From NCBI RefSeq assembly GCF_035594765.1, contig NC_085845.1, positions 29,320,024 to 29,384,023 on the forward strand: a DNA stretch of 64,000 bases, given 5' to 3'. Below are positions 23,821-48,504 of the stretch, in pieces. The notes beneath the pieces are model-generated. The model was not told the DNA's origin and did not search any database. It was given only the letters and a program-made list of their open reading frames with translations. This DNA is from Anolis carolinensis. Its lineage: Eukaryota. Position 1 is the stretch's first letter; each line of letters starts with the position of its first letter. Made by a program: the position numbers and the translations under genes.

Positions 23821-24672
23821 GAGGTCTGTTGGAAACTAGTCAAGTAGGGTTTATATATCTGTGGAAAGTTCAGGTTGGGAGAAAGAACTCTTGTCTGTTT
23901 GAGGCAAGTGTGAATGTTGCAGGTAATGACCTTGATTAGTATTGAAAGCCTGGCTGCTTCCTTCCTGGGGGAATCCTTTGTTGGGAGGTGTTAACCGGCC
24001 CTGATTGTTTCATTCCTGGAATTCCCCTGTTTTCAGATTGTTGATCTTTATTTACTGTCCTGATTTTAGAGTTTTTTAAATATTGGGAGCCTGGTTTTGT
24101 TCATTTTCATGGTTTCCTCCTTTCTGTTGAAATTGTCCACCAAACTCAGTATCCAAACATGAATCAAGGAGCATGAAAGTCACTGCAGGCTAACTCAATT
24201 GGAGAAGTCAGCCATGGCAGAGCACTTGATGAACCAACCTGGACACAGCCTATTATTTGAGGACAGAGAAATGCTGGACCACTCTAACAACCACCATTTC
24301 AGACTACACAGAGATGCCACTGAAATCCACAAGCTTGCGGACAATTTCAACCGAAAGGAGAAAACCATGAAAATGAACAAAATCTGGCTACCGGTATTAA
24401 AAAACTTTAAATTCAAAACAGTAAATAAAGAATAACTCTCAGAAAACAGGGGAATTCCAAGCATAAAACAATCAGGGCCAGTTAACACCTCCCAACAAAG
24501 GATCCCCCCAGGCAGGAAGCAGAAAGGCTTTAAAGCTGCGAGGCCATCAAATGCTAATCAAGGTGATCAATTGCAACAGTCACACTTTCCTCCAGCAGAC
24601 AAGTTCTTTCTCTCACCCTGGACCTTCCACAGATATACAGTAGAAACCCCACTTGCCTAGTTTCCAACAGAT

Positions 24673-24722
24673 CTCACAACTTCTGAGGATGCCTGCCATG
24701 GATGCAGGCGAAACGTCAGAAA
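24673..24722 (+). ncRNA. Minimal type I hammerhead ribozyme (Penelope)
   Basis: CUGAGGA 24683-24689, perfect stem II GCCUGC/GCAGGC, GAAAC-GUC 24710-24717. Confidence 0.7.
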
Positions 24723-24948
24723 AAAATGCTTCCCCATAGCCTGGAAAACTCACAGTAACCCAATGATTCCGGCCATTAAAGCCTTCGACAACAAACTCAT
24801 TTCTGATTTATTTCAACCCTATCAGGGTTTTTGGGGTTTTTTTGGGGGGGGCGGGGGGGGGGGGAGACATTTACTCAGAAGGCGCTTGCTTGTGCAAGTC
24901 TGCAAAACCCTGGGAATGAAGAGAATCCTGGCTGAAAGTCGAACTAGC

Positions 24949-25162: not shown

Positions 25163-25254
25163 GTACCAGGAAGGGGTGTTTTGGGGGGACGTGTCATATA
25201 TTCATTCATTTCTGCGTTGTCTGGCAGGGTTTTGCCACTCCTTACTTTAAACCC

Positions 25255-25472
25255 TCCTGCCAACCTAGCAGTTCGAAAACATGCCAATGTGAGTAGATCA
25301 ATAGGTACTGCTCCGGCGGAAAGGTAACGGCGCTCCATGCAGTCATGCCGGCCACATGACCTTGGAGGTGTCTACGGACAACGCCGGCTCTTCGGCTTAG
25401 AAATGAAGATGAGCACCAACCCCCAGAGTCGGTCACGACTGGACTTAACATCAAGGGGAAAACCTTTACCTA
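25255..25472 (+). mobile_element. Sauria SINE, 5'-truncated
   Basis: family sequence with ACCTTT tail; others at 34315-34590 (+), 36499-36820 (-), 49640-49938 (+). Confidence 0.85.
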
Positions 25473-26005: not shown

Positions 26006-27583
26006 CTTAGACTCAGGAGACCAGGGTTTGAGTCAGGTCCATAGCCAGAAAAAAAATTGGGAGGGTTTTAATTCCCCCTATCCCATAACTTTTCAGGTCA
26101 GTGTCTTCTGATTAACAAGGCCCTGAAATTACCATCATTGTGCAAATGTTCTTCACAGGTAATAGGTCCTGAATCATCGCTCCCTCTTTAAGTCAATTGT
26201 TATAGACCACAAAGGACAATAGTTTCCAGAAGTTTCTTTCTGTTTTCTTCTTATTACCTTTATCATGATGACGGGTTACATCAAGATGTTTTCCACTATG
26301 AATTAGCAATAAAATTTCAGCCAAGCTCAAGTTGTTCTGATGGTACTGTACTCTGTTTTTTGGTGTCTATTGAAGACTTAGATTGCATTTTTCAATCACA
26401 CAAAATGGTTTAGCAACACTACTCAGAAAACAGAGGAATTCCAGACATGAATCAGTCAGGGCCAGTTGTCAGGAATTGTGAGAGTTGAAGTCCAAAACAC
26501 CTGGAGGGCCGAAGTTTGCCTATGCCTGGTCTACCCTGCTTGTCTACCCCCTTAGGGCTGCCTTAAGCCAAACATGACTTGAAGGCACACAACAATAACA
26601 CCATCTGTCTATGTTTATATATAGTGTATACACATATATATGTGGAGTTCATTTCCAAAAGGTACCAAATCCTTCTGAACACATTTCCTAGGAATCATGC
26701 CGAGAATGTGCATTCTTTTGTTATAAAATGCAATTTCACAAATCCTGTACTGAGTTGATTTGATTGTTTTCATATGTACATAATATTCCAAGCCTAGTCA
26801 ACAATGGGTTTAATACCTTGTGGAAACAAACTCCAAATATATATGCAAACACACAGGGCATCCCAAAATAGTATATCCCTTTAACAGCTTACAGTAGCCA
26901 TGGTAATGATGTAAAGACTAAGTGAACACATTTATCTTGAAGAGTGAATGTTACAATGATTGAATCAGATTTACAAATTCCCACTTAGCCGTAGAAACCA
27001 TAGAGGAAGGCAAACAAATCTTGCCCATTGTGATAGATAGATAGATCAGGTAATTCGGAAATGAAGTGAAGGCACTCCTCTTTCTAACATTTTGGTATTT
27101 CAATACAACAAATTCCATTGTACACCCATCTCGATACCTAGCAAGAGCTAGATTGACATTGCCATATCTACATATGTATGTTTTAATTTAATTCCAAGAT
27201 GCTGGGAATAGTGGAGTGTTACCTATTTGTTTTTGTTACAAAGCAACATGATAAAGTTTACACTGGTAGATTTTACATGAGTAAATAATTGTTATTACCT
27301 TTTTATCTTGATTGAGACACAAAGTGGCTCACAACATTAAAAAATGTGCTATTATTTTGCAGTGTATACATTTTTGCTGTTTCTCGTAGTAAAACTCTAA
27401 AATATAATTTCAGTGATCACTGAGCTTTTGGAAAGGCTTACAATGTGCTGTCTGCTGGACTGTTTTGTGGACTGTTCTGTGTTACCCATAACACCAGCTA
27501 ATGTGCCCGGCACAGACAATATTAAATATTTGCTAAAAATGTGTTGTTGTTGTTGTTATTTCTCTGTTAAACAGAAGGGAGGG

Positions 27584-27779
27584 ATGTCATTCCGAGGAAG
27601 AGGAGGGGGCAATCGTGGTGGCGGATTCAATCGTGGAGGTGGATTCAACCGAGGTGGAGGCGGTTTCAATAGAGGCGGATTCAGTCGTGGTGGTGGAAGA
27701 GGTGGCTTTGGACGTGGAGGAGGACGAGGAGGCTTCAACAGGGGTGGATATGATCAGGGACCCCCCGAAAGTGTAGTCA
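27584..27779 (+). CDS. GAR1: GAR1 (H/ACA RNP subunit 1) first coding exon, N-terminal GAR/RGG domain
   Basis: MSFRGRGGGNRGGGFNRGG...DQGPPESVV; acceptor AG 27573-74; GTAAGT donor. Confidence 0.97.
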
Positions 27780-27858
27780 GTAAGTGGTATTCACTCCTAA
27801 TCGAATTGGAAGAAAATATTGTTCCATGTTGACTGACTTCATGCTGTCTCTCTTGCAG

Positions 27859-28013
27859 TTCTGGGAGAATTTATGCACCCTTGTGAAGATGATATAGTTT
27901 GCAAATGTATCACTCAAGAAAGCAAAGTGCCTTATTTCAATGCACCAGTCTATTTAGAAAATAAAGAGCAGATTGGGAAAGTGGATGAAATATTCGGACA
28001 GATCAGAGACTTT
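27859..28013 (+). CDS. GAR1: GAR1 coding exon 2 ([16 protein letters not shown]...[24 protein letters not shown])
   Basis: Gar1 core domain; followed by U12-type donor GTATCCTTT. Confidence 0.98.
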
Positions 28014-28981
28014 GTATCCTTTGATTTATTAAACACTTGTATTCCGTCCTATATCATGGGCTCTCAGGATGACGTATAATGTAAGTAGTTTAAAACATTT
28101 TTGGATTAAAATGTTAATAATTTATACAAAATAAAAACATATTAAAGAAATAGTTTAAAACCATTGTAAAAACTGCAGTTTAAATCTATTTGCATGTATA
28201 CTTGAAATAAGTTACTATATATATTCATATATAAGTCAATTTCATGTATAAGTTCAAGACAGGTTTTGGGGCCAAAATCATGGACTTTGATATGACCTGT
28301 GAGTCATTTCAAGGAGAGGGGAAAGATTCTGTCAAGTGATTACTAAATAAATTATTTAGATATAGTACAGGTGCTCTGCTTGGGTAGTTACAGCTCAAAA
28401 AGTCCTTTCCCAATTCTACTCAGAAAAATTATTTATTCTTATCCAAAAAAAAAGGAACCATACTTTTTATTAAAAAGGCAAAAGCCAAGAGCTTAATCAA
28501 TCCTTGGGAAAATCTAAGTAAAGCATGAGCTCCTTCTACTCTTTGAGCTTCAAAGAGCCAATTATGCTTTTTCTACCACTGCCATTTTCCCACCCAGACA
28601 TGCAAAAAGCCGAGAATTGGCTGCAGTGGAAAGAGCAAAGTGAATGAACTTGAACTATTAAGTCCACTGTGTGTGTGAGTCATTACTGTCAAGTGATTAC
28701 TAAATAAGTCAAGAATCCAGGTTATCTGGTTTGAAGTGGATTATATGGTAGTGTAGACTGTATAATCCAGTTCAAAGCAGATAATGTGGATTGTCTGCTT
28801 TGATAATCTGGATTATATGGCAGTGTAGAAGGGGGCCTTAGAACAGACACACTGAAGTCAATGAGACTGTGGCCAGTCATGAGTAATGAGTGTGACTTGG
28901 GCTTTCTGTAAAAGTTAACTTATGCTTATGGAGGAGATATAAAATGCTTTTTCAAATGATTTCCTTAAGCAAATCTAATAG
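28014..28981 (+). other. GAR1: U12-type (minor spliceosome) GT-AG intron of GAR1
   Basis: 5'ss GTATCCTTT; branch-like TTCCTTAAG at 28961-28969, ~12 nt before the AG; no polypyrimidine tract. Confidence 0.88.
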
Positions 28982-29041
28982 TATTTTTCCGTCAAACTGT
29001 CAGACAATATGAAAGCGTCTTCCTTCAAAAAACTACAAAAG
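28982..29041 (+). CDS. GAR1: GAR1 coding exon 3 (YFSVKLSDNMKASSFKKLQK)
   Basis: 60 nt, phase 0-0. Confidence 0.96.
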
Positions 29042-29586
29042 GTAAGATTAAATTTATCTTCAGTAAATAAAGTACATAGCTTTACTTACAATGCTTTTGT
29101 CAACAAGTTTTAATCATGTGCATGAAATTCTTATACACAGAACGTAATTTAAGCATACCCAGTGGCTTCTTGAATGCATATGTAGCAAATAGGGTATTTA
29201 AATATTGCTACTTTAAAAATATGCAATTTCTCTAATGATAGCAGTACTCCAATGTGAGACATGTTTATTTAATAAAAATTGTAGCATCCAATGAACTGTT
29301 CATTGATACTTTGTTCATTAATATGCGTTACTGGTCCTATTTCAGCTAAAATTAAGTCATAAATAAAACAGTAATTCTGTTATGTTCATTGGAATTATAC
29401 TTGCTTAGGATTTCCCCAAGCATCTTATGGAAAATAGTGGAAATTTGTAAACCTTTGGCTAACTTATCACATTTGTTAAACAATGTTTAGTCATACTTAA
29501 CTGAATTACAAATACGTAGTAACATGTTGATCAATTGATTTGTAGTCCACAAAACTCAGGCTACAGTAATAGAAAGAAAATAGTTA

Positions 29587-30415
29587 TAGAATCATAGAGT
29601 TGAAAGAGTCCACAAGGGCCAATCCAGTCCAACCCCCTGCAAAGCAAGAAGACACAATCAAAGCACCCCTGACAGATGGCTATCCAGCCTCTGCTTAAAA
29701 AATCTCCAGAGAAGGAAACTCCATCACACACTGAGGCAGCATATTCCACAGCTGAATAGCTCTTACTGCCAGACTATTCTTCCTAATGTTTAAGTGGAAT
29801 CTCTTTTCCAGCAATTTAAATCAATTGCTCCATTTCCTAGTTCCCAGAGCAGCAGAAAACAAGCCCTTCCCCCTCCTCAGTGTAACATCCTTTTAAATAT
29901 TTAAATATATCTATCCCTTTCTCTCAGCCTTTTTTTTTCAGCCTACCCAGTTTCCTAAGTCATCCCTCATTGGGTTTAGTTTCCAAACTTTTGATCATTA
30001 TGGTTGTTCTCTGGATATGTTCAAGTTGTCAATATCCTTCTTGAACTGGACACAGTATTCCAAGTGATAGCAGAATAGAGTTGGACTATGACTTCCCTCG
30101 GTTTTGATACTATACTCCTATTAATGAAATCTAGAATTGCATTGGCTTTTTAGCTGCTGCATCACACTGTTGACTTATATTCAGCTTGTGATCTACTAAA
30201 ACTCCTAGATCCCTTTCACATGTACTGTTTTCAAGCCAGATGTCACCCATCCGATAGCTGTGCATTTCATTTTTATAGCCAAAGTATTGAAATACAGTTT
30301 ATTTGTTTTGGCCCAGCTCTCTAATCTGTAAAGGTCATTTTGATCTGGTCCTATTAGCTATCCCTTCTGATGTGGTGTCATCTGTAAATTTGATAAGCAT
30401 GCTTTCATCCAAGAT
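29587..30415 (-). mobile_element. CR1 LINE 3' fragment, older
   Basis: reverse complement of the CR1 tail (catagaatcatagagttg) and ORF2 end. Confidence 0.85.
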
Positions 30416-30532
30416 TTACTTCAATAAAACAAGGCTAATTTAATTTGACAGTCTAAAGGTGCAACATGACTATGGGTTTTGCAAATGATATTGAAAGAGT
30501 TGACAAATCCTAATACAAGCTTTCTGTTTCAG

Positions 30533-30671
30533 TTTTACATCGATCCAATGAAATTGCTCCCTCTGCAGAGATTTTTGCCACGGCCTCCTGGAGAGAAAGG
30601 ACCTCCTCGAGGCGGGAGAGGAGGCCGCGGAGGAAGAGGAGGAGGCCGAGGAGGAGGTGGTAGAGGCGGAG
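30533..30671 (+). CDS. GAR1: GAR1 coding exon 4 ([31 protein letters not shown]...)
   Basis: ORF 30479-30748; AG/GT. Confidence 0.97.
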
Positions 30672-30950
30672 GTAGGCAGCCTTCATTCTTGCATGTGTCC
30701 AGAGCAGCCTTTGCCAATCTGATGTTTTCTGAATGCGTTGGACTATAACTCTTGCAATCAGCTTGGGGGATTGTTGAGTTGTCATCAGGTGCCCCTGGAA
30801 GGGTTTTCTAAATCAGGCATGGGCAAACCTCGGCCCTCTAGTAGGCTGTTAGGAATTGTAGGAGTTGATGTAAAAAACATGGTTTCTACCAATATTTTTA
30901 TTTATTACCAAAAAATCTTAACTTGCCTTCCTGCGTTCTCTTATTTCTAG

Positions 30951-31028
30951 GTGGATTTAGGGGTGGCAGAGGCGGTGGAGGGTTCAGAGGAGGACGAGGT
31001 GGTGGAGGTGGTGGCCGAGGATTCAGAG
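30951..31028 (+). CDS. GAR1: GAR1 coding exon 5 (C-terminal GAR domain)
   Basis: GGFRGGRGGGGFRGGRGG...; 78 nt, phase 1-1. Confidence 0.95.
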
Positions 31029-31385
31029 GTAAGCATTTTCATATTAATTTAGCAATATTGATTTTTGAAATTGATAACCTGTAGTATTGTTTTTGTTCTG
31101 AGGAATGTTTAGTACTGTATTCTTTTGCTTATCAATATGGTTCAATTAAGGGAATATTCCAGGAATTCTTTGTAAGTTTATCATGGTATTCTTATCAGTT
31201 GTCGAAGGTAAATTTCTGTTCATAGATGCCGTGTCTGCCAATTTTCTCCCCATTCAACATGCAACCACAGAAGGAAATTGGTTGTATCTGTAATGCCTTC
31301 TTGATTATGTCAAAGCAAAGTGTGTTGCAGAATGACCTTGTGCCCCAAATTCCAGTTAATGTGGTGGGCCAAATAATGAGAAACT

Positions 31386-31713: not shown

Positions 31714-33954
31714 AATAAAACTACATTATGGCTGCATCTTCAAAATACAATGAGAGGATTTCTTACGAACTTGAATGGACAATTTGAAGCATACAGTAAT
31801 TTGAACTATTGCAACTATACTTCATGGATTTCTATTAAGATGGAACAGATTAAGAAGTGCAGCTGCTTATTTTGAAACTACTTGGATCTTACCTTGGGCA
31901 GCTGGATTTAGATGCAATGATATTTTACAACTTTTTTATCAATTTATTTTTATATCAAAAATCTCTTCTTGGTTTTGGGAAATCAGTTAACTTATAAAAA
32001 CAGTTTAAACATTTACGTCATAAAATACAAATGTTTCAGATTAATTTTTTTTGGTCTTTGTGTTTTAGTTATTGTCAGTTTTGATGTGCACCATGAAAAC
32101 ATGTATATCCAAATAACCTGAATATGATTTCAGGACTGCTAATTTGAAATAAATTATAATTTAAACCCTACAATGAATGATAAATGAAAGCTCAGATGTC
32201 TTAAATCAATAGTGTAATGTGGAGCTGAAACTACATTTATTGTGCCATAGTGCAAAGATACACATAATACTGATTGGCAAGCTGTGTGTGTTTTGCTTTG
32301 CATCTGATCCTCTCCCCTGAATAATGCTCTGTCAATACATTGTTTTTTAAATTTAGGAAAAAAACCTGAAGCAGCTTTATTAAGGAAACGAAGAACAATG
32401 TTGATTGATTTGCTGTAATTCAGCGGCCGTCTATTTTGGGAGATTGTTGAGGTATCTGATTTTGTTCTTCAGCTTTCAGAAGGATGGGCACTTAGCATTA
32501 AGGCACATTTGAGGTTTGGTTTTATATAGTATACATAGACAGGGCCGGTTTACCTTACGAGGCCAGTTAAGCTGCCGCCTCGGGCGCCGCCGCTAGGGGG
32601 CGCTGTCGACGCCTCGACAGCGTCCCGTAGCGCCGCCGCTGCCGCCGCGCCAAACTACAAAGCTCTGAAGTGGCTGGGATCCACCAGAGCAGGAGGAAAC
32701 GCGCCCAACCAGACCCTCGGGAGCGCCTTTCCACCCACTTTACAAACCCGAGGAGCGGCTTGAAGGGGCTCTGAGCCCCCCAAAATCTCCCCTTTGGGTT
32801 GGCGGGAGAAGAGGGCTTTGAGAACGAGAGGATCTTCAAGGCGGGGGCCCAGCTCCAAAACAAAGCCGGGAAGGAGATAGATGGGACCTGGAAGAAACCC
32901 TCCCGAGATCCTCCTCCTCCTTCCCTCAGGAGTCTGGCACCACTTGCACAGCGGCGGAAAATGAGGGAAGAAAAGACAGATAGAAAACGTGGGGAGTGGA
33001 GCCAGAAGCGCGCCTGCCTCCGTCCTTCTCCTCTTCCCTGCCTCTCACTTTGGGAGGTTGCGAGGCTCCCAGGCGCTTCCCCCACCTTCCAGCTCCGGAA
33101 AGAGGCTTCCCCGCTGAGGCTGAAGAAAAGGAGAGGCTGAAGGGGGGGAGAGACACGCCAAGCCTGGGGCGCTTCCTTCCTCCTCAGCGCCGCCTCAGCC
33201 CAACTCTGCCTCTTTCGTTCCCTCTCCCTCTTGGTCTCCCCGCCAGTGGAGGGCCGGCGCCTCCTCCCTGCAGCTCCGCAAAGAGAGGCGAAGAGAAGGA
33301 AGGCTCAGGGCTCGGCCGGGCAAAACAAAAACCCCGCGCGCTCCCAAAGAGACGAAGAAAGCGAGGGGAGGGGGACTTGGGGGAGGGGTGCCTGAAGGGG
33401 CGAGGAGGAAAAGCCCGCCTTCCAAAGAAGGTCTGCGAGGAGGAGACCCCCAGGAGACTCCCCTCCCCCAAGGGTCCCCTGTCATGCTCTTTCCACCTAA
33501 AGTGGAACCACAATAAAACCTTCAAACATTCAAGGTGTATAACAAATGCCACATCTACAAACACTGCATACATAGGCAGTAGACCAGAGCTTTCCAAATA
33601 AGTAGTCTCACTTATCCAACACTCGCTTATCCAATGTTCTGGATTATCCAACGCATTTTTGTAGTCAATGTTTTTCAGTACATTGTGATATTTTGGTGCT
33701 AAATTCTTAAATACAGTAGCATTACTGTATATTGAACTACTTTTTCTGTCAAATTTGTTGTATAACATGATGTTTTGGTGCTTAATTTGTAAAATCCTAA
33801 TCTAATTTGATTTTTAATAGGCTTTTCCTTAATCCCTCCTTATTATCCAACATATTCACTTATCCAATGTTCTGCCAGCCCGTTTATGTTGGATAAGTGA
33901 GACTCTACTGTACAGGATTTCACTTTTTTCACAGTTTTATTAGCAAACCAGTTA

Positions 33955-34209
33955 GGAGCCCCAGATGGTGTAGTTGACTAAAGGTTGGCTTGCTGACCTG
34001 AAAGCTGACAGGTTCGAATCCCACCCGGGGAGAGTGCGAATGAGCTCCCTCTATCAGCTCCAGCCCCATGCAGGGACATGAGAGAAGCCTCCCACAAGGA
34101 TGGTAAAAACATCAAAAACATCCAAGCGTCCCCTGGGCAACGTCCTTGCAGACGGCCAATTCTCTCACTCCAGAAGCGACTCAAGTTGCTCCTGACATGA
34201 AAAAAAAAA
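33955..34209 (+). mobile_element. ACASINE-like SINE
   Basis: same family as 13846; polyA; flanking repeat AGCAAACCAG at 33942-33951 / 34210-34219. Confidence 0.85.
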
Positions 34210-35724
34210 AGCAAACCAGAGGTTAACCCTTATAAGAGGTATGGAGAGTAGATTCCTAGTTAACCAGAACCCTCAAGGAACTGGCAAAAAATTGGAAGAA
34301 ATAATACTGTATTGACAGCTGAGCTGCTGAACTTGCTGACCGAAAGGTTGGCGGTTCAAATTCAGGGAGCAGGGTGAGCTCCCACTGTTAGCTTCTGCCA
34401 ACCTAGCAGTTTGAAAACATGCAAATGTGAGTAGATCAATAGGTACCACTCCATGCAGTCATGACGACCACATGACCTTGGAGGCATCTATGTACAACAC
34501 GGGCTTTTCAGCTTAAAAATGAAAATTAGCACCAACCCCTAGATTTGGTCATGACTAGACTTAATTTCAAGGGGAAACCTTTATCTTTAAAGTTTGTCTT
34601 TATTTGTCTTCATTTGTGTTTAATTACTGTATTTCCATAGTAATACCAAGTGAATACAGAGTTTTGGGTTTGGTACAGTACGAGGTATAGTGTTAGGCCT
34701 GTTTTAAAGAGTTACTCTCAAGCAGCCAGAAACTACATTCATTCAACAGCTAATTCGCACGGGTGCTGGTTAACTGAGGATCTACTGTACAATAACTACC
34801 CTATATACTTATGTATAAGTCTAGTACTTTTAGTAAGAAAAATACATCCCAAAAACTTGGGTTGACTTATCCACAGATCAATATGTCCTGTATCTTAATT
34901 CTTACGAAATAAGGAGCCATCAACTTTGAATGGAGTGACAAAAAGTGAAAGCCTAGTCCATCCCAAGATAACCTCAAAGATGCACCAGCCCCTCGAATCT
35001 CTGCACATGCCACCGCTTCTGAATACTTCCCTGGAAAAATGGGGTAGCAGGAGTTTTCCCTTCTCCACAGAAGAACCCTTGACTTATCAACAGGTGATAT
35101 CAAAATTCATAATTTGGGTGCCAAAGCCTGCCCTCACTAAGTTCACTAAATGAAACCAAAAAAACGGATTGTGTCACTTCCAACTGGCCAAAAGATACTT
35201 TCTCTGCTACAGTTATATAAAAAGAAACATTTATAATATCAACATGTATTTCTAGTTTAACTATTACACCTACAGCTACTTATTTTAACCAAAGCCTAAA
35301 GTTCATTCTGGGCTCCATTTATTCTTCATGTACTCAGTTGCCTCTCTCCCTCTTTTCAAGGCTCTTGCGGAATTCTAGCATTTTAACAGCTCCGCGTCTG
35401 GAAAGAGGGAGAAAGAATCGGCGTGAGGCCAGGGCCACCAGACGTTCACAACCCTCGCTTTGTCCTTGTTGTTTTCAGGCTGGACTGGGCTGTGCACGTG
35501 GTCCCAATTATGTTAGGATCTGGTTTGTATCTTTCTTGAAGTCTTGTGAGACTGCAGGAAAAGATAGGCCCAGCTCTGCCCTGTTTGTTTTGAGGGGTTT
35601 TTTAGTGGCTGAAGGCATTCAAAAAGTGGTGCTGTTTTAAGCTATTTCAAGATTTCCTCAATACAGTACCATGTAGTATCTTCCAGGTTGCTTTGAAGCA
35701 AGCTTCATCATACAAATATGGAAT

Positions 35725-36070
35725 CACTGAATCCTAGATTTGGAAGAAACCACGAGGACCAACCAGTCACACTCCCTGCTATGCAGAAAAATACAATCAA
35801 AGCACACATGACAGATAGTCACCCAGCCTCTGACTGACAGGTCGACAGTTCAAAGCCAAGGAGAGTGGTTGAGCTCCCTCTGTCAGCTCCAGCTCCCCAT
35901 GTGGGGACTTGAGAGTAGCCTCCCACAAGGATGGTAAAAACATCAAAACATCCGGGCATCCCCTGGGCAACAACCTTGCAGACCGTCCATTCTTTCACAC
36001 CAGAAGCAACTTTCTCAAGTCGATCCTGACATGGAAAAAACCCAGCCTCTGCTTAAAAACCTCCAGAGAA
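35725..36070 (-). mobile_element. CR1 3' fragment interrupted by a plus-strand SINE (35833-36039)
   Basis: 12-bp TSD ACCCAGCCTCTG at 35821-35832 / 36040-36051. Confidence 0.8.
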
Positions 36071-36395
36071 AGAGTTGTCAAAGGTGAGAGATTCCTTTAT
36101 GAAAAGTCATAAAGGAATTCAGTAACAAACACCCTTGAGACTAAGCTTTCCTGGATATCAATCCAGTGAACGTGGTATGTTCACTGCCAGGGCCGGTTTA
36201 CCTTATGAGGCTGGTTAACCTGCCACCTCGGGTGCACGCCGCTAGGGGGCGCTGTTGACGCCTCGACAGCGCCCCGTAGCGCCGCCGCTGCCACCGTGCC
36301 AAACTGCAAAGCTCTGAAGTTGCTGGACGCAGGCGCAGATCGGCCGGCCGATCCGCACATGCGCCCAGCCATTTAGGGCGACATGGTATGGATAT

Positions 36396-36447
36396 CTCAC
36401 AACCTCTGAGGATGCCTGCCATAGATGTGGGCGAAACGTCAGGAGAG
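36396..36447 (+). ncRNA. Minimal hammerhead ribozyme in a Penelope fragment inside the hAT
   Basis: CUGAGGA 36406-36412, GCCUGC/GUGGGC, GAAAC-GUC 36433-36440, stem I CCU/AGG. Confidence 0.7.
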
Positions 36448-37735
36448 AATACTTCTGGAACATGGCCACACAGCCCGAAAGACATACAACAACCCTAAAG
36501 GGTAAACGTTTTCCCCTGACATTAAGTCCAGTCATGTCTGATTCTGGGGTTTGGTGCTCATCTCCATTTCTAAGCCAAAGAGCCAGCGTTGTCCGTAGAC
36601 TCCTCCAAGGTCATGTGAGATGACTGCATGGAGCGGCGTTACCTTCCCGCTGGAGCAGTACCTATTGATGCACTCAAATTTGCATGTTTTTGAACGTCTG
36701 GGTTGGCAGAAGCTGGGGCTAACAGTGAGGGCTCACTCTGGTCCCCCAATTCAAACCTGCTGCGGCCTTTTGGTCCAGAATTTCAGCAGCTCAGTGCTTT
36801 CACATGCTGTGCCATCAGGGGATATTATTTCTTAAAGGTTGTGAATATACAATATTTCCAATTGTTTTTTTTTGTCTGTTAGAGGCAAGTATGAATGCTG
36901 CAATTAGGAAAAATGATAAGGATGTAATGGCCTTGCAGCTTTACAGCCTGGCTGTTTCCTCTCTAAGTGAATTTTTTGTTGGGAGGTGTTAGCTGGCCCT
37001 GATTGTTTCCTGTCTGGAATTCCCCTGTTTTCAGAGTGGTGTTCTTTGCGATATGGTATGTGCTTCTACCGTCTGTGGCCGTGAGAAAACAGAGGATTTA
37101 CCAGACTTTGATGATGGGAATACTTTGTTGGGAGGTGTTAGCTGGCCCTCTCACGATATATTGAAAACATTGACTACAAAAATGCGTTGGATAATCCTGA
37201 ACATTGGATAAGGGAGTGTTGGATAAGTAAGACTCTACTGTAATTACTACATAGCATTACTACGCATGGAACTACTTTTTCTGTCAAATTTGTTGTCTAA
37301 CATGATGCTGTGGTGCTTAATTTGTAAACTCATAACCTATTTTGATGTTTAATAGGCTTTTTCTTAATCTCTCCTTATTATACAACGTATTCGCTTATCC
37401 AACGTTCTGCTGGCCCATTTATGTTGGATAAGTGAGACTCTACAGTAGAGACTCTACTGTAGAGTCTCTGCTGTACTTAAAAAGTCCTCAAGTATAGCAC
37501 TGCTAGGAATAATGCTCAAATGCTTGGTCCATAACCATGTCTAGCAAGGCTATTCAATGCTAATCACCATTTTTTGATTATCCAATGCTCTGCTGGCCCA
37601 TTTATGTGGGATAAATGAGACTCTACTGTACTTGGATGGAGCTGCAGGCTGTATTTCTGCTGTGTTGTCATAAGCTGAAAGTTGTTCTGCGTCATTCCCC
37701 TTCCTTATATGACGAGTTGGGTTTTTTAGCAGAAA

Positions 37736-38047
37736 ATGTCAAGCAAGAAGAAGCCATCGGGAGCATTTCATCGTAAAAGGAGGTTGCAGCATAGCCAAGA
37801 AGATAAGAGTCAAGCTAAAGCATTGCAAAGGTTTTTCACGACTTCACCATCATGTCAGACAGGAAAGCCAGAGACAACAAAATTGACTGAATCAGATCAT
37901 GCTGATGATGGAAAGATACCAATCTCAGAGCCTCTACCAGGACCATCAACCAGTCAAGACCTTGTCACTGCGACTTCAGCAATACCATTTCCACCTTCCT
38001 GTATTGGCATTACTGGGACTGACACTGAAGATGTGGATTTGTGTTAA
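37736..38047 (+). pseudogene. 5' remnant of a hAT (Tip100/ZMYM1-like) transposase
   Basis: MSSKKKPSGAFHRKRR...KALQRFF N-terminus recalled as typical of this group; no catalytic domain; lies inside the TIR-bounded element. Confidence 0.6.
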
Positions 38048-40719
38048 GGAAAACTGGATGTTAAAATATCCACTCAAGTGAAGGGGCCATAGGCTGGCTA
38101 TGTTGCCACTCCCATTACAATGGTCCACACTGGCGTGGCACTTCTGAAGGACAAGAGTTCACTTCCTGAGAAAGGAAGTGTCTATTCTCCTGGGGCTGCG
38201 TTCTCCCAAAACAAAACTGATCTGAAGCTAGTCTGAAGTCTGAAAAATCTTCTGAAGAGATATCATGACCAGGAAACCTTTGTGTAGTACTTGTAGACTA
38301 GAAATAACAAAAAAATTAAAATTGTTGCAAAGTTTATTAAAATATTTAATTATTAAAATGCCAGATTGGTGTTAATTCTATGTAATGTTACTATATGAAC
38401 ATAATGTTGTTAATAAACTTCTGGTTGTAAGGTAAACTCTTTTATCCATTCTATTCACTTCTGCCTTTTATTTCTCGGTGATTGGGGTTTTTTTTGAGGG
38501 GGGCACCAAAATCCTGTTTCGCTTACACTTGAAAATTTCCTTGGGCCGGCCCTGTACATAGACTTGTGCTGTAGATTTTGAAGAGGCATGAATAAAGTGT
38601 GAAAGGGAAAAACATGCCAAGAGGAAGGTGCATCAAGTAAATCCTTGTCGTGACTGTCTTCCATCTGGAAATCTATGTCCTCATCGTGAACAACCATGCA
38701 GATTGAGACGGCGCCTCTACAGTCACTTACGGACCCACTGCCAAGACTTTACCTTTGGAAGACAATCAAAGAGCCAAAAAATGATTGAATATGAAGAACA
38801 GTTCCGGTGTCTTCAGCAGTATCATAGTATCAGCTATGACAACAACAACATAAACCAGAGTTCTGATTGGTGATATCCTAAAGTTAAAAAGCACACCAAT
38901 ATGTTAAAACTTATATATGCAATCGTTAAAGCATTGTGCAAAGTTCTATATGGCAGCTAGGCTGTTCCCTCCTCAATGATGTTAGGAAATATTAGTGGAA
39001 ATCTGTGTAAACAATTTTTTTTTGTGTGTCGGACCTAAGTTTTGAATTCTTAAAAATGAATTTCTGTACTGCTTACTGTATGAATGAGGCAAATCTATAG
39101 TATAGAAGGGCTCTTTCAGAAAAAAACCCAGATATTTGGAGTGCCCATAAACTTAAAACAATCTGCTTTGAAACTGTTAAAATGGCTTATGTACATATTA
39201 AGTTGAATTTAGGTATTAATTAAATCACGTAAGAAGTTAGTTATAGTTGGTCTACATTGAACTTGGTTTCATAACTTAGTTTGAGTGCAGTCCATTAATC
39301 TACAAAAGACTGGAAGATTTTGAAGAAGTTCACTGTAGCCAGTCTTTCCATTTCAGTAGGAATGAAAAATAACTTCAAGTTTTTATACAACTAGGATTTA
39401 GTTCTAGGATTGCCGATACCATAATTTGCTACATATTTTCCCAGGATTGCTGATATCATAATTTGCCACGTATTTTTCTATTGCAAGTACTATATTTTTT
39501 CTACCTGATGTATATTCCATAGTGCTTTGTTGTCCACTACATTTCCGTTCATATTTCTTGCTATACAAGCAGGGATGTGTTTAACTTGCATAGATACATC
39601 ATAAATTCCTCTGAGTATCTTAAGAATCCTAACAAAAAAATCATAGAAAACAAATTTGCAGCTATCCCATTGTTTTACTTCTTCAGAAAGCACTAATGTC
39701 TCAATATGAAATATATGGACCAACTTGACAGTGATTTAAAAGGATGTGATAACACAAGAAATATGCTTCTATTACATTTGTCCTTATATTGCTGGTTCCC
39801 ACATTCCTTCCTTGCTTGACTGCCTGAAAACAAACTTTTATTAGCCCTTTCGTATAGGATTGAAGCCAAGTCAGGGCCCCTTCCATAGAAAATGAGTGTA
39901 CCAGTGTGTCTTCAAGAAAGGAGGATTTTTTTTCTTCACTAGCCTTAAACAAGCTCCTTTTAGTTGGACAATGCATGGGAGATTTGCCTGATAAATGTTA
40001 TATGTCATCCTGATCAGGGAGTGTACACCTTTGAAAACTGTTTGATTGCCAGTTGGCTCTACTTTGGTAGAAGAGGAGGAGAGGATGAAAAAGCAAAGAG
40101 AACAAAAACCTTATCAGGAGACAAGTAATGGGGTCAGGCAGACATGAGGGGCACATGAAGAGTTAAGTGGAAAGAGCAATGAAAGGAGAGGAGAAAACAA
40201 CAGAAAATATGGAATGGAAACCAGAAAGAAGTGATAAAGAAAAGTGACAAGACTAAAGGGGTCGTGGAACAGTTTGACATCAGTTTAATTGCCAGGGCTC
40301 AATGTTACAAGGTCCTGGGATTTGTAGCTTGCTGAGACATTAGCACTCTGGCAGAGATGGCTAAAGGCTTTCTAAAAGGACAACTTCCCTGATTCCATAG
40401 CACTGAGCCATGGCAGTTAAGCTGGCGTCAAGCTGTATTAATTTTTCAATGCAGATGCATCTGAAAATTAAGGTTTTGCATTGGCCATATTTCATTTGGT
40501 TAAATGGTTTCTTAGATTCCAAGCAAACTATAATCTAAAATTCAACCCAGGAGAAATGAAGAATTCAATGTAGAGTATTTGTATCAGTGACATTATGTTT
40601 GTTTGGTTGCATGCTGAAATTCACGACTGGTGTGAAAGAATCAACTGTCTACAAAGATGTTGCCCAGGGGAAGCCTGGATGTGTTACGATTCTACGGGGA
40701 GGCTTCTCTCATGTCCTCC

Positions 40720-41428: not shown

Positions 41429-42052
41429 TCAGTGACATTGAAGTTTAAGAGGAAATGGCAAGTTTCAACATTTCAAATCTTTTTCGTATATATATATATA
41501 TATATACACACAACTTAGTTTTGTGTAAACTAGAGTGGATTTGTCCTGTTTGACGGAGGTGATGCTGAGAGCAGTATACTTTTGCTGGAGTACTGACTAT
41601 GGCTATCCTAGCTGTTCAAATTTCTGAACCAAGTTGAAAAAGTTATCAAATGTAGGCAAACTTTTTGCAACATTACATGAAAGAATGGAAACGGTGGGGA
41701 GGGGGAATAAAAGCTGGAAGTACAAAGTGTGGGGTTTATGTGATCGCTAATCTCTTCACTAATAAGGCCACGAAGCGTAAGCATTTTGTTGGAAATGCCC
41801 TCAAGCTCAGTGCTGTTCTTTGTTGAATTCACAAAGCCTCTCCCCCTTCCAAAGGCTGGGAATGTAAACCCCTTGGCTCTTTTCTTAAAATCTTGTTGGG
41901 AAGTTTTCAGCCGGGGAGAACTATACACTGTTTTGTAGCGCAAGAATTGGCCCAAATAGACTTGCTGTGGTGTTGTTTTTCAATTTCTTCTAGTGAATGG
42001 CCTTTTGCTTGTTAGCTCTGGAAACTTATTTTCCAATTTTCTTTCCCCTGCA

Positions 42053-42158
42053 ATGTTTTTGAATGATTCTGCTAACTCTTCGGAAAGTGACGATGAACCT
42101 CATTCTGCTTTTTCCCAGGCTGAACACAACATAGTTGCAGCTTATTTGATAACAGCAG
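42053..42158 (+). CDS. RRH: Peropsin (RPE-derived rhodopsin homolog) exon 1 (MFLNDSANSSESDDEPHSAFSQAEHNIVAAYLITA)
   Basis: N-glycosylation sequons, start of TM1, 106 nt, GTATG donor. Confidence 0.93.
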
Positions 42159-43502
42159 GTATGAATATTGATAGAATTGCTTAACGGAGTTGCAAAATTT
42201 CCAGAATTGTTGAAGTTTGTAGGGAAAGAATAATTTTGCTGGTTCTTTTTTTAGGGAAAAAATACATTTTTGGAGAAGTTTGAATGTGATTTTGGCTTCC
42301 TTTAAAGACTGAAAGCCACTTTGTTACTTTAGACATGTAAAAAGTATTACATATACATAACTTGGTTTGATATGTTTAATATATTATAAGTGGAGTTTAT
42401 TCAAATAATTACTAATTGAATTTGCTTCTTAATTTTTTTCATAACATGGAGAATAGCCGAACTGTAAGGAATCGCTATTGTGTTTCCAGTTTTATGAGGA
42501 GCTGGCAGAAAGCATTCAATTAAAGAAAGAAAATTATTTTGTATTTCTAGTCTGCTATAGCATCAAACATAAAGCACCAATTTCCATAAAAAGGACTGGC
42601 AAAAGAAACAAAGAACAGGAACTGCTTATGTCTTACATAAAAGTCTTCCATAGCTGTTACATAATTTTTAAGGTTTTTGGCAGTGAAATAACCATATGAA
42701 TACCTTGCCTCAAACATCTTATCCTTCTAAAGGGAAATATTCCATTATCCATTTACCATATTTTCAGGAAAATCATTGACGGATCCCCAAATCACTTTGT
42801 TTGGGGTGGTGGGAGTGGTGGAGGGTATTTATTTGGGAGTCAACATAGTAGTTTGACTGACTATGACTCTGGAGACAGGATTTGAATCTCCACTCAGTTA
42901 TGGAAACCTATTGGGCATGTCACACTCTGTCAACCTCAGAGGAAGGCAAATTCTGCCAAGAGAAGCCCATGATAAGTTCTTCGTAAGGTCCCTATAAGTT
43001 GGAAATGGCTTGAAGGCACACAATAACAATAAAGCATGTATTTGTTACTTCCTATTGTGTTGTATTGTAGCACTTATAATTTTTATTACTTTATTTGTAA
43101 TTGTTTGCAATAGTGAATGGCTAGTGCCATGGTTAGGAATACAGGGTAACATAATGCATAGGACTGCTGTCCTTTTACTAGTTGTGTTGAACGGCATTTC
43201 AGCAGGTGTGGCTTGTCATCCTGAGATCCTGATAACTTTAGCTCCGCCTCATGTTTCCTTGTGTGTATTTTATGGGAAATGGTACAACTGTCACGGGGGG
43301 GGGGGGGAACGGGGACTGGGTGGTAAGACTTTGAGTCTTGTTTCAGCTGTATGCTTCACTTGCAAAGGATTTGATAAGTTGTATAAGTTTGGAAAATGAT
43401 TGGTTGTACTCATCCATACACATAATGATGGCCAGGATGTGAAAAAAGGTCATCCAGGGAGTAATACATGATAGGCTTGTGACATACAGGGCTTCAGTCA
43501 GT

Positions 43503-44637
43503 ACCTCCAAGGAAGCCCCTCAGATACTGGACCAGTGCTTGGCGGCTGTGATGGGCTGGATGAGGGCGAACAAGCTGAAGCTTAATCCTGACAAGACAGA
43601 GGTCCTCCAGGTCAGTCGCATGTCTGATCGGGGTATTGGGTGGCAACCTGTGCTTGACGGGGTCGCACTCCCCCTGAAGGCGCAGGTCCGCAGCTTGGGG
43701 GTCCTCCTGGACTCATCACTGACACTTGAGGCTCAGGTGCCGGCGGTGGCCGGGAGGGCCTTTGCACAACTAAAACTTGTGCGCCAGCTGCGACCATACC
43801 TCGTGAAGTCTGATCTGGCTACGGTGGTCCATGCCTTAGTTACCTCTAGATTGGATTATTGCAACACACTCTACGTGGGGCTGCCTTTGAAGACGGCCCG
43901 GAAACTCCAACTAGTTCAGCGGGCGGCAGCCAGGTTCCTAACAGGAGCAAATTACAGGGAGCGGTCTACTCCCCTGTTCAAGGAGCTCCACTGGCTGCCG
44001 TTCACCTTCCGGACCCAATTCAAGGTGCAGGTGTTGACCTACAAAGCCCTGAACGGTTTGGGACCCACTTACCTTTCTGACCGCATCTCCCCCTATGAAC
44101 CCGCACGATCTCTTCGTCCGTCGGAGGAGGCCCTCCTCTCGCTTCCGCCTCCGTCACAAGCTTGGTTGGTGGGGACGAGGGAGAGGGCCCCTCTGGCTCT
44201 GGAACCCGCTCCCCAGGGAAATTAGGCAAGCTGCCACCTTGGATGTGTTCAGAAAGAGCCTGAAAACCTGGCTCTTCAAACAGGCCTTTGAAGAAGTACC
44301 GCCCACTGTTTGCTAAACCCTGGTACTAGCGGGTTCTTCTGACCAGTTGTTGGTTAACTCCTTGACATAGCCTCAGAGTTCACCCCAGTTTAAGGCTCTT
44401 CCCATGACGTTGTATCACCTTAATCTTCCAACTTGTTTACAAGTTCCACTCAGTGCACTTTGTCCAGCTCATTTTATGTTTTTATTGCTGTGTTTTTCAT
44501 GTGTTTTATAATGACCGTGATTTTTAATGCCTTTTAAATTTACTTGTGTGTTTTTGTAAAACCATATACTGTATGCTGGTTTTATATCTGTAAGCCGCCC
44601 CGAGTCCCTCTGGGGAGATGGTGGCGGAGTACAAAAA

Positions 44638-44640
<3 letters not shown>
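43503..44640 (+). mobile_element. L2 LINE, 5'-truncated
   Basis: RT C-terminal WMRANKLKLNPDKTE...VHALVTSRLDYCN; L2 tail GTAAGCCGCCCCGAGTCCC then (TTA)n. Confidence 0.93.

Positions 44641-44696
<56 letters not shown>
44638..44696. repeat. (TTA)n microsatellite
   Basis: direct; others: (CTA)n(ATA)n 45659-45733, (AAAT)n 59621-59662, (ATT)n 60003-60053. Confidence 0.98.
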
Positions 44697-44698
<2 letters not shown>

Positions 44699-44703
44699 TT
44701 GAC

Positions 44704-44838
44704 CAATGGTTCTGAACCTGTGGGTCCCCAGATGTTTTGGCCTTCAACTCCCAGAAATCCTAACAGCTGGTAAACTGGCTGGGATTTCTGGGAGTTGTAG
44801 GTCAAAACACCTGGAGACCCACAGGTTGAGAACCACTG
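44704..44838. mobile_element. hAT MITE (CAGTGGTTCTCAACC TIR)
   Basis: palindromic; near-perfect 8-bp TSD ACCTTGAC/ACCTAGAC; copies at 50486-50620 and 56619-56753. Confidence 0.85.
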
Positions 44839-45658
44839 ACCTAGACTGATGTGGGTTTGTTTTGATCTTGAAGGGTTTACATTGCTTCCCACAGGTGTTT
44901 TCATCTGGGGCAGTTGGCCAGACAGGTGACTGAAGATTTTCATGTTATTATTTAAACATTTTTATTTTGTAACAAAATATAACTCATTCCCAAGCACACA
45001 TGGTCAGTATCAGGGCAACAAAAGCAACATCATTATGTTGTTGGAGAACCAGCATGGACATAGTGATTTAAGTGTTGGACTACAACCAGGGTTGAAAGGG
45101 CCTTTTAAACCCACTGGTTGATCCTAGACAAGTCACACACTCTTATTACATGTTCTTCGTTCTTGCTATATTAGATTAATGTCTCTCAATTACATTTTTA
45201 AAAGGTGTCACTTCCCATATAAGAAAACATTTCAGTTTTAGTTCTGTATGAATGATACTAGATATTGCTAGTACCTGTCCTTGGTGGTCCAGGTCCATAA
45301 CTGATTGAAAATGTGTGAGGATATTCCCCTTTGTCAGTCCAGCACAAGCAACAATAATTGTCTGAGAAGCAATTCTCTTCCTGGATGCAGGACCACTAAC
45401 CAGTGTTGGCAACGAGACAAAACATACAAGTCTAGCTCATAGGAATGTAGCTCATAGCAATGATTGTGTTTTTAATTGAATGTTTTAATTTAATTTAATG
45501 TTTTATAATCTTATTATTAATTTGCTAATTGTGTTGTGGTTTATCTTGTTGGGTGTGTCATTAATTGTTTATTGTGTTTTTATGCATTTTGTTGTATTAT
45601 TCATACTGTGAGCTGCCCTGAATCCCCTTTGGAGATGGGGCAGGGTATAAATAAAGTT

Positions 45659-45734
<76 letters not shown>

Positions 45735-46682
45735 GACCTGAAATTGTCTAGGAGCAGTTAAGATTCCTTGGAGGCTTATTGCTGGGTGTTTTGCTTCATT
45801 TCAAGTTATTATTGCTTTCATTTTTCAACACAACAACATCTGATTATTTCATTTCCTAACTACATCAATTTTTGAGTTTCAGCTTGCAAGGGAGATGCTT
45901 CCTGGTGTTTTGTATAATTCTCTATTGTACAGAGAATATACAGGTGACCATCTGTTGATAGTCTGAATGGCTATTGAAAAAGATTAAGACATACGGAAAA
46001 CTGAGGGGGGTTTTATGCGTTATATTTCCTCTTGGAAACAAAAAAAAATAGATAGTATGCTGTTTTTCCACTAACCATCTGGCTTTCAAATTCTTGTGTA
46101 TATAAATGGACACTTTCACTGCCATATGACTTCTAGGTTATTTATTTACCTTGACTATCTTCTACTGTGCGGTGTTAGTGATGTTTTGTTGATTGTTACC
46201 CCAGTAAATAGAGGTGTGGTGGTGAGGTTATTAAGTTATCAGATTCCATTCTTTAAATGTATACATTCAAAGGTAAGTGGACAAGTGCAATTTTGACTGT
46301 GCTCATGACAATGTGAAAGAGTCTAAACAGTTTTAAAAGGTGGTTTCACATGGAAAGTGTTGTAGCAATACAGTTAAATGAATTAGGCACAGGCAAATAT
46401 TGTTTAGCATTATGTATGTATGGATAATTTGCATAGGAATGGTATGGTGGCTCCCACATTGGTCAGGTAGTGGATCCAAGGATCTATCCAAGGTGCTGAA
46501 TATCTAAAGCTTGGTACCTTGGATAGCCCCTTTAACAATCAATTTAAAATCCAGGGCAGAACATCTAATGAATCATTTCAAAATAGAGATCTAGACTGTG
46601 ATTTTTTTTGGGGGGGGGGTGGGTGGGTGGGTGAGATAATGTATACCAATTCTGTACTAATACTTTGTTTGTCTTTTGACAG

Positions 46683-46873
46683 GGGTCATAAGCCTTCTCA
46701 GTAACATAGTTGTGCTAGGCATCTTTGTTAAGTACAAGGAACTTCGGACAGCAACCAATGCTATTATTATCAACCTGGCTTTCACTGACATTGGCGTGAG
46801 TGGTATTGGTTACCCCATGTCTGCAGCTTCAGATCTGCATGGAAGCTGGAAGTTTGGCTACACAGGTTGCCAG
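46683..46873 (+). CDS. RRH: RRH exon 2 (TM1-TM2, LRTATNAIIINLAFTD...GCQ)
   Basis: ORF 46676-46888; 191 nt. Confidence 0.98.
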
Positions 46874-47720
46874 GTACTTGGATTTTAGCAAGTACTTGAT
46901 TGGTGAAATAAGCTCAACTCCATTAAAGGTTATATCACAGTAAATCGGTTAGTCTTTCAAGAGATATGAGGAGGCTGACTGCTGCATGGAAGCCAGAAAT
47001 GATGGAAAATAAAGATAAAACTGGTAACAGGTTGCCACTAGGTGGCTGCCTTAGCAAGATTCCTCTTATCCCTGCCTTGTTGTATCTCCATCTTTCAGCT
47101 ATTGTGCAGTGGTTAGTAGATCTTAACTGCTTTAGTTATGCATGAAGGTCAGCTTCAAGAAAACCTGTTTCTGGAAATATGGTCAGTTTATTCCAATGCA
47201 TATGCTTAATCTATACTCATATTCTATGTATCCTTCCTTTTCTTTTTTCAATAGAGGTTCTATAATTTTTTTAATTAAACATATGAAACAGAACAACCTA
47301 AACCAGAATTTTAAAAATGGTAGGATAAAAGCTAAGTAAAATCAGTGATGGAGGTAACTGTGATGTAAGTGATCGTATAAATACTTAAAAGTTTTTCAAA
47401 GCTAAAAAGGTTTGGGAAAATAAAAAAGAAAGCATTGGAAGCCCCTCTTAGAAGAATCTGCTTCAGTTGGGTGCTACCACCAAAAATATTGCCATTGCTT
47501 AGTTTGGCAAATGTGTTAAGAACAAACGTTGCACAAGTATTAGTGGTACCTAATATTTCATTCTTGAAATCTCATTGATGTTAGATTTGGATTGCTTAAT
47601 GGCTTATGATATCGAGAGACTATTAAATGGTTGTATCCACTGCTGAATACAATATGCAACAATGCATGGTAAGAAAAAATGAAGATTAAAATGATGTATT
47701 TCCCCCCTTTAAAATTTCAG

Positions 47721-47820
47721 ATCTATGCTGCTTTAAATATCTTCTTTGGAATGGCAAGTATTGGTTTGCTTACTGTTGTTGCTATTGATCGTTATCTGAC
47801 AATCTGCAAGCCGCATATAG
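47721..47820 (+). CDS. RRH: RRH exon 3 (TM3, DRY motif)
   Basis: IYAALNIFFGMASIGLLTVVAIDRYLTIC; 100 nt. Confidence 0.98.
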
Positions 47821-48504
47821 GTATGTTTTAAAAATATTTCACATTTAGAAAATCCATAATAATTTGTAATTAGGAATCCAATTTAAATGTTGGAATATTT
47901 CTTACTGGATAAATTTGTATTCTGTAAATTCTTATTTTGCATATAGAATCACAAATGGCATACACATAAACATCTCTATACTGATCTGGTAAGTTTTTGT
48001 GTCATCTGGGAATGCTTGAAAATAGATTTTGAGGCTTTAATGTCACCTAAAACACAAAGAAATGAACTTTCTCCAACATCGTTCACCCTGAGATTTGCCT
48101 TTCTGTTGAGAAATCCAAGTAAGAATAGCAATTTCCAGAGATTTCAGCCAGTTCTCTCTGATCTGTCAATTTTATTAAAATTCTTCAATGGTACAAATAC
48201 CAAAATTGTTTAGACTGGTATGGTAGTGTGCACTCCATGGAAAAAAGAAGGCTGTAAGGCAGAACATTTTAACAAAAGCTGGCATAGGGGTAATATTATG
48301 ACTTAAAATGATGCCACACCAGCCAAGTCTGTTAGACTTCAATCCCATGGATATTAGCATATATGAAAACTTTTCTGGAAAGTTTTTAATTCTGTTTATA
48401 GATTTTATGCATCTTGTTCTCTTTAAAAATCTTTGTGTGACTGCTTCAATTTCTGAAGTGATTGAAAAGTATAAGTAAAAGTAATATTGTATATTTGTCA
48501 ATAG

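Follow-up and report, generated by a model that had tools for sequence, protein, structure and literature searches.

A 6,015-bp unit with the termini of a hAT transposon was found in a 64,000-nucleotide stretch of the Anolis carolinensis genome (RefSeq contig NC_085845.1, positions 29,320,024 to 29,384,023; this whole stretch is called the window below, and all coordinates refer to it). The unit lies between GAR1 and an opsin gene that resembles RRH. A single target site duplication (TSD) surrounds its two outer ends, a second, unused left end is present in its interior, and the 3,510 bp between the two left ends (the cargo) resemble host DNA. The best explanation, which we hold with even confidence, is that a single transposition paired the left end of one element with the right end of another and moved the DNA between them. 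A fuller version is proposed more tentatively, as something a little short of an even prospect: in a vertebrate macrotransposition, 3.5 kb of single-copy host DNA with a 0.8-kb CpG-rich promoter-like block was cut from its native locus and pasted behind GAR1, and a sister species, approximately 3% diverged, would still show the arrangement before the move.

The boundaries of the unit were determined from its flanks and termini. A perfect 8-bp TSD, TACATAGA, was present at 32532-32539 and 38555-38562. The unit began with CAGGGCCGG at 32540 and ended with CCGGCCCTG at 38554; these sequences form a 9-bp pair of terminal inverted repeats (TIRs), and the inverted similarity between the two ends ceased after 9 bp. 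For a fixed pair of ends, the chance of identical flanking 8-mers was approximately 1.5e-5; TACATAGA was counted 6 times on both strands of the window versus 2.3 expected. The 8-bp TSD and the short, CAG-type TIRs starting with YARNG are hallmarks of hAT elements. Because one TSD and one pair of TIRs bound the whole 6,015 bp, it may be concluded that a unit with these two ends was once inserted at this site.

Inside the unit, a second CAGGGCCGG was found at 36188. The alignment of 32540-32677 with 36188-36326 comprised 139 columns with 90.6% identity (E 5e-49). No significant homology was detected past 32677 and 36326, where the gapped local score was 47.5 and shuffled sequences scored 36 +/- 6 with a maximum of 64; extended homology downstream of both left ends was therefore rejected. 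The inner left end was preceded by the 8-mer TTCACTGC (36180-36187), and no second copy of this 8-mer was found within the element. When the window was searched with a relaxed right-end pattern, CCG[GC]C[CT]CTG, only the positions 38546 and 23995 were returned. The latter was rejected as a second right end since it lies inside the inverted arms of an unrelated palindromic high-copy repeat, which left 38546-38554 as the sole genuine match. Thus, the original prediction of a perfect TSD around the outer left end and the right end, a second left end at 36188 preceded by an unrelated 8-mer, and a single right end was confirmed, and the coordinates given there were exact. In having one TSD around the whole unit and an unused terminus inside it, the unit shares one feature of macrotransposons.

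Other candidate ends were also rejected. The sequence GGCCCTG at 36995 proved to be a fragment of the same inverted-arm repeat. Matches to the left-end 15-mer at 23989, 24473 and 62278 were not accepted as hAT ends, and the first two of them sit in the inverted arms, each of approximately 330 bp, of this unrelated repeat. The repeat occurs at 23700-24750 and 58112-58442, with fragments at 36392-36495 and 36872-37149, and it carries an internal CCGGCCCTG that mimics the right terminus of the hAT unit. Loose contig ends showed that its consensus runs on past 37047.

Public sequencing runs were used as independent evidence. Logan contigs with at least 85% likeness to 32760-38759 were collected from three conspecific runs belonging to three studies (X1, X5 and X16; organism A) and from one run that has another species label and is approximately 3% diverged (X10; organism B). 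The stretch 32760-38759 starts to the right of the left junction and takes in the right junction and the first 205 bases of the right flank. The junction between the cargo and the inner left end was spanned without mismatches by an X5 contig (36045-36258) and by an X16 contig starting at 36045. Since these conspecific runs are independent, an assembly artefact is ruled out for this junction. Among the matches listed, none spanned the right junction.

The two left ends were compared to determine whether one could be a recent copy of the other. They differed at 13 of the 139 positions, and at least 7 of these 13 differences were CpG-to-TpG or CpG-to-CpA changes in the inner copy; the CpG observed/expected ratio of the outer left end was 1.14. 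In each conspecific run, 12-19 family contigs carried the changes 36225 A>G and 36297 T>C, and the outer copy has these family majority letters (at 32577 and 32648) where the inner copy departs from them. The CpG decay of the inner copy and the majority letters in the outer one argue that the two ends are separate family copies and not products of a recent internal duplication. Tandem duplication of the two halves of the unit was also considered and rejected. Collinear MITEs (miniature inverted-repeat transposable elements) at 33717-33915 and 37252-37450 are only 88% alike, and unrelated MITE copies in the window are 87-91% alike, so the halves did not arise in this way. The spacing of the collinear MITEs is 3535, versus 3648 for the left ends. 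Each left end also contains an imperfect 22+22-nt palindrome (32588-32635 and 36237-36284).

The cargo was found to consist of a 0.8-kb GC-rich block, a MITE of approximately 330 bp, several short interspersed repeats and approximately 1.2 kb of low-copy DNA. As had been predicted, it is not transposase sequence: no Pfam domain was detected in it, and its unique parts appeared single-copy and host-like. The repeat mosaic expected between the left ends was likewise recovered, both by self-comparison of the window and from contig depth; window copies of the short interspersed repeats of the cargo are located at 13887-14119, 35860-36040, 49644-49940 and 25254-25471. A CpG island had also been placed in the cargo. 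At 32680-33500, with a GC content of 62% and a CpG observed/expected ratio of 0.52, this island is only borderline.

Over either unique part of the cargo (32760-33560 and 35160-35560), X1, X5 and X10 each yielded a single contig. No second cargo contig of at least 85% identity was present over 32760-33560 or 35160-35560 in these runs, where identical copies could have collapsed into one. A family-borne origin of the GC-rich block was rejected on this ground, because the block is single-copy. Therefore, no donor or source copy with at least 85% identity was visible, and the single-copy status of the cargo favours relocation over capture of the copy type, as in Pack elements. The label "Pack" in the original prediction implies capture by copying. 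The low-copy cargo was represented by contigs from X1 (34554-35669), X5 (34561-35895) and X10 (34953-35889, with 26 mismatches). At 32997, 33165, 33173, 34683 and 34997 and after 35412 (+AAG), the reference letter was unlike that of all four runs, organism B included, which indicates approximately 0.3% private derived changes in the cargo of the reference haplotype. An extra T after 35597 was observed in the three conspecific runs.

The cargo is present in organism B as well, in single contigs with approximately 3% divergence. In this organism, nt 1-139 of a 2,147-nt contig matched 36045-36187 without a mismatch, and the contig then diverged exactly at 36187/36188. Its remaining part, approximately 2 kb, had no likeness to anything in 32760-38759. 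The site after the cargo in organism B is therefore without the inner element and without the present right flank.

These observations can be accounted for by alternative pairing of transposon ends. Under this explanation, the outer termini would come from two different elements of one small family. The left partner would be a minimal left end of 138 bp joined to DNA from outside the family, and the right partner would be the right end of a complete 2.4-kb family element located 3.5 kb downstream in the same orientation. The 2.4-kb element could have lain beside the left end or could have been nested in a longer element owning that end. A transposase acting in trans would pair the two ends, excise the whole interval and paste it between GAR1 and the RRH-like opsin gene. 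The insertion would create the TACATAGA duplication, and 3.5 kb of host-like DNA together with the unused inner left end would be carried along. The cut-and-paste mode would keep the cargo single-copy, and the DNA that once followed the inner element, which is still joined to the cargo in organism B, would be left behind. Alternative pairing accounts for the unrelated 8-mer before the inner end and for the missing second TTCACTGC. It also accounts for the single-copy cargo in both species and for the approximately 2 kb that follow the cargo in organism B only. We infer the pairing of ends from two elements, the cut-and-paste mode and the order of these events. The original partner of the right end may have been either the outer or the inner left end. 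Joint mobilisation of the left end of one element and the right end of a nearby one had been predicted. Of that proposal, the insertion of a unit with these two ends, the family-typical inner part and the host-like cargo were supported; the derivation from two neighbouring elements mobilised together is less certain, as a nested insertion with later deletion or a repair-synthesis chimera gives the same sequence.

Several points weigh against alternative pairing and relocation. The version with adjacent elements requires a "fractured" element that retained its left end alone. The target site TACATAGA, with C as its third and A as its sixth letter, fits poorly to the published hAT-N6-8 target consensus NTTRYAAN/NNTNNANN. 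The outer left end may have joined the cargo before the two species split: the GC-block contig of organism B reaches approximately 138 nt to the left of 32760, that is, approximately 55 nt into the expected outer left end, and it stops about where a repeated left end would break it. The corresponding X5 contig breaks at about 32633. In addition, the depth of the GC block (32760-33560) was 0.5-0.7 of that of 34550-35900 in the conspecific runs (0.68 in X1 and about half in X5 and X16), versus 0.94 in X10; this may reflect GC bias, or the rest of the cargo may be present twice. The comparison was made with Logan contigs only, from which rare variants are dropped; such contigs can show that a sequence is present but not that it is absent, and true copy numbers cannot be read from them. 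Finally, the stretch compared, 32760-38759, revealed neither an empty site nor a donor locus or excision footprint.

The rival that accounts best for the same data, although we consider it unlikely, is nested insertion followed by deletion in place. Under this scenario, the two outer ends belonged together from the start, and alternative pairing did not take place. An older element consisting of the 138-bp left end, the cargo, at least approximately 2 kb of filler and the right end would have made the TACATAGA duplication; a 2.4-kb family member would then have landed inside it at TTCACTGC; and recombination between the right parts would have deleted the inner right terminus, the second TTCACTGC and the leftover filler. 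Exactly the present sequence would result, and a minimal outer left end followed by filler would be explained in the same manner as in Ds2 and hobo-N (PMC3260210, PMC3014272). The organism B contig that runs from 36187 into approximately 2 kb of other DNA fits this scenario equally well, as does the GC-block contig of organism B that ends at the expected repeated left end. The right part of the family (37631-38554) gives several hundred bp of homology for such recombination, and recombination between elements is documented for anole hATs (PMC3014272). However, the cargo would then have been captured earlier as filler, but neither species had a visible source copy of at least 85% identity, and it must be assumed that the source was lost or diverged by more than 15% in both. 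The insertion and a precise recombination would also be required within a short time. Moreover, the later arrival should look younger, yet CpG decay is stronger in the inner left end than in the outer; this argument is weak since a cut-and-paste copy keeps its age.

Rather improbable is a chimera formed by repair synthesis. Here, a young family member would have been excised, and repair of the gap would have copied from an ectopic template, host DNA together with an adjoining old member, and re-annealed in the homologous right part in one step, either at this site or before a transposition to it. Template switching that yields filler DNA is the accepted origin of the interiors of Ds2 and hobo-N (PMC3260210, PMC3014272), and the interior of the inner element is itself a patchwork with short duplicated fragments. 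In X5 and X16, the depth of the GC block was approximately half that of 34.5-36.2 kb, which would fit a segment of 33.6-38.5 kb that is present twice; the ratios in X1 and X10 are also expected from GC bias. The depth of the cargo was not accepted as a baseline for copy number in this connection: a duplication of the cargo would include the inner left end, and the reasoning against a copy-type origin would be circular. The template of such repair should persist, but the cargo contigs of 1.1-1.3 kb had no bubbles or second variants (at positions with another letter, this letter made up either the whole depth or none of it), so that two copies would need to be nearly identical. Organism B also lacks an old element at the proposed template site.

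Very improbable, in our estimate, is a composite insertion produced by transposition of reversed ends and re-replication, as in the maize P1-ovov454 derivatives. In such an event, facing termini would insert at TACATAGA in S phase, each terminus would drag along a re-replicated copy of its own element and outer flank, and the two copies would be joined inside the cargo. A truncated end, flanking DNA, a complete element and an 8-bp TSD mirror the published cases (PMC4270019). However, this mechanism predicts duplicated flanks, a kept donor and a chimeric junction in the cargo, and neither a second copy nor such a junction was seen. A spurious second left end or TSD, owing to chance or to an assembly artefact, can practically be dismissed: the similarity of the left ends, the low chance of an identical 8-bp flank, the recovery of the inner junction in two independent runs (X5 and X16) and a window free of N all argue against it.

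The proposed pairing of ends has precedents in maize. For Ac/Ds macrotransposons, which measure 10-100 kb, excision with footprints and reinsertion with 8-bp TSDs are established (PMC9910405, PMC3260210), and composite insertions with 8-bp TSDs likewise excise and reinsert (PMC4270019). The maize macrotransposons were described by Huang and Dooner (2008; as cited in PMC3260210 and PMC9910405) and by Wang et al. (2022; as cited in PMC9910405). In these cases, the 5' and 3' ends of two hATs in direct orientation are paired, host DNA is moved and unused ends remain inside, as is proposed for the anole unit. In maize, the donor, the footprint and the reinsertion were followed genetically, whereas the anole case is known from its end product alone; its left partner is a bare 138-bp end and not a whole element, and its host is a vertebrate. 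Ds-l4-483 is similar in being a natural multi-kb element of a reference genome with one family end duplicated; between its family termini lie a piece of a retrotransposon and host DNA that is transcribed (PMC3260210, fig. 5). It differs in having a complete element on one side, a truncated duplicate on the other and three TSD copies, whereas the anole unit has two. The left ends of the anole unit are 9% diverged and therefore not fresh duplicates. In composite insertions from reversed ends, termini also flank former flanking DNA, with an 8-bp TSD and later macrotransposon-like behaviour (PMC4270019). These are segmental duplications in which the donor is kept, whereas the unique parts of the anole cargo appear single-copy.

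In the anole genome itself, hATs are known to take up foreign filler DNA with other transposons and to recombine with one another (Novick et al. 2010, PMC3014272). The hobo_AC/hobo-N and hAT-N6/7/8_AC elements resemble the present unit in that they are non-autonomous elements of the same genome with transposon-bearing filler and inter-element recombination (PMC3014272). The hobo-N TIR (TAGGCTT...) is unrelated to that of the unit. The hAT-N6/7/8_AC elements are orphan families with the 12-bp TIR CAGAGSCGGYCC (PMC3014272, table 1). When only TIRs were compared, the reverse complement of the right TIR region (CAGGGCCGGCCC) matched CAGAGSCGGYCC at 11 of 12 positions, with G for A at position 4, and the left end matched it at 9 of 12. 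The 8-mer TTCACTGC fits the hAT-N6-8 target consensus at neither position 3 nor position 6, which is a weak criterion for single sites. The published anole families are multi-copy with family-specific interiors, whereas the cargo is single-copy, and the internal second left end has no counterpart in PMC3014272.

Apart from one review on fish, a search of full-text literature for "macrotransposon" gave studies of plants only. Thus, a vertebrate example would be new, although the kind of event is already known. If the alternative pairing is true, it would represent a natural vertebrate case of a mechanism that has so far been worked out almost only in maize, in which neighbouring non-autonomous hATs act as one large transposon and move kilobases of unique, potentially regulatory DNA. 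The share of the anole hAT filler (Novick et al. 2010) that is due to relocation rather than to repair copying would become testable. The same would apply to the shuffling of CpG-rich promoter-like DNA near genes; at the present site, one neighbour is a housekeeping gene and the other a retinal opsin gene. If the nested insertion is true, the unit would have arisen by the ordinary decay of two family members and would hold little further interest.

The inner element is typical of its family. It consists of the left end, pieces of other repeats in a patchwork (36392-37631), the 0.9-kb family-specific right part (37631-38554), which is repeated in the family, and the right TIR, and its interior holds small duplicated fragments (36969-37000 and 37118-37149). 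Family contigs ran past 36326 along the inner copy, and the summed contig depth climbed toward its right terminus. A contig covering 37631-37824 was identical in all runs, with a depth from approximately 3 times (organism A) to approximately 20 times (organism B) that of a single contig. A joint of 37029 to 38103 was found in X1 and X5 contigs at approximately 7-10 single-copy depth equivalents, which indicates that shorter family variants without these 1,073 bp are present. The left-end family is small in organism A, at approximately 10-20 single-copy depth equivalents, which are not copy numbers. By summed contig depth over 36160-36360 and 37631-37824, the family was approximately tenfold more abundant in organism B than in the three conspecific runs, which suggests stronger or more recent activity there.

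Among the 20 scanned open reading frames (ORFs) of at least 60 aa in the element, no Pfam domain was detected apart from one sub-threshold TniQ match, and no transposase with a hAT dimerisation domain was found. Therefore, this copy of the element is non-autonomous. For anole hAT-N6-8, no autonomous partner was found by Novick et al. (PMC3014272). No tRNA was found in the element, and no Rfam family reached the threshold, with only a sub-threshold snoU30 match. Two cargo ORFs that were looked up as exact sequences gave no match, nor did word searches with one cargo ORF and one right-flank ORF. The matches to the ORF of a GAR1 exon came from distant reptiles and birds, with no anole among them, and a metagenome scan for the left end gave 0 matches. 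The features of the unit are listed in Table 1.

Table 1. Positions of the features of the 6,015-bp unit and its target site duplication in the window.
Feature	Coordinates	Strand	Remarks
Left TSD copy TACATAGA	32532..32539	+	identical to 38555-38562
Outer left end, 138 bp: TIR CAGGGCCGG and CpG-dense subterminal region with imperfect palindrome, then unique DNA	32540..32677	+	
GC-rich cargo block, 62-65% GC, without coding signal	32678..33480	.	one contig per run in X1, X5, X10
High-copy Mariner-like MITE	33604..33930	+	copies 14483-14804 and 56284-56603; summed depth ~10^6; Mariner label tentative, from the original prediction and TIR appearance
Two high-copy short interspersed repeats, 33981-34215 and 34319-34597	33981..34597	.	
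Mainly low- or single-copy cargo	34598..35859	.	bins 35160-35559 near one-contig depth
Second copy of the 33981-34215 repeat type, 84% identity	35860..36040	.	
Unique 3' cargo end, terminating in TTCACTGC	36041..36187	+	
Inner left end, 139 bp, 90.6% identical to outer, more CpG-decayed	36188..36326	+	
Inner 2,367-bp family-type non-autonomous element	36188..38554	+	
Right TIR CCGGCCCTG	38546..38554	+	reverse complement CAGGGCCGGCCC
Right TSD copy TACATAGA	38555..38562	+	

The position of the unit relative to the neighbouring genes was established from their exons. GAR1 is on the + strand at 27413-31040. Its Gar1-domain exon lies at 27849-28013, and the other exons were located by tblastn with reptile and bird GAR1 and taken individually. 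The last, glycine/arginine-rich coding exon ends near 31040 and is followed by AATAAA motifs at 31714 and 32148. The element is thus intergenic and lies 0.4-0.8 kb 3' of these motifs, which are candidate GAR1 poly(A) signals. On the other side, opsin-type exons consistent with RRH were found on the + strand at ~41.96-50.3 kb (41960-50283). A trypsin-domain exon and a cysteine-rich exon, like those of complement factor I, are located at 8119-8619 and 20498-20836, both on the - strand, and an LRIT3-like leucine-rich-repeat gene is located at 60298-60816 on the + strand. This order of genes (factor I-like, GAR1, RRH-like, LRIT3-like) agrees with that of the human 4q25 neighbourhood. In the right flank of the unit, 38602-38698 is an old repeat with 77% identity to 8038-8133 and a summed depth of approximately 100 times that of a single copy, and an ORF of this flank encodes a degenerate zinc-finger-like ...HLRTH motif, as in the ORFs of long interspersed elements (LINEs).

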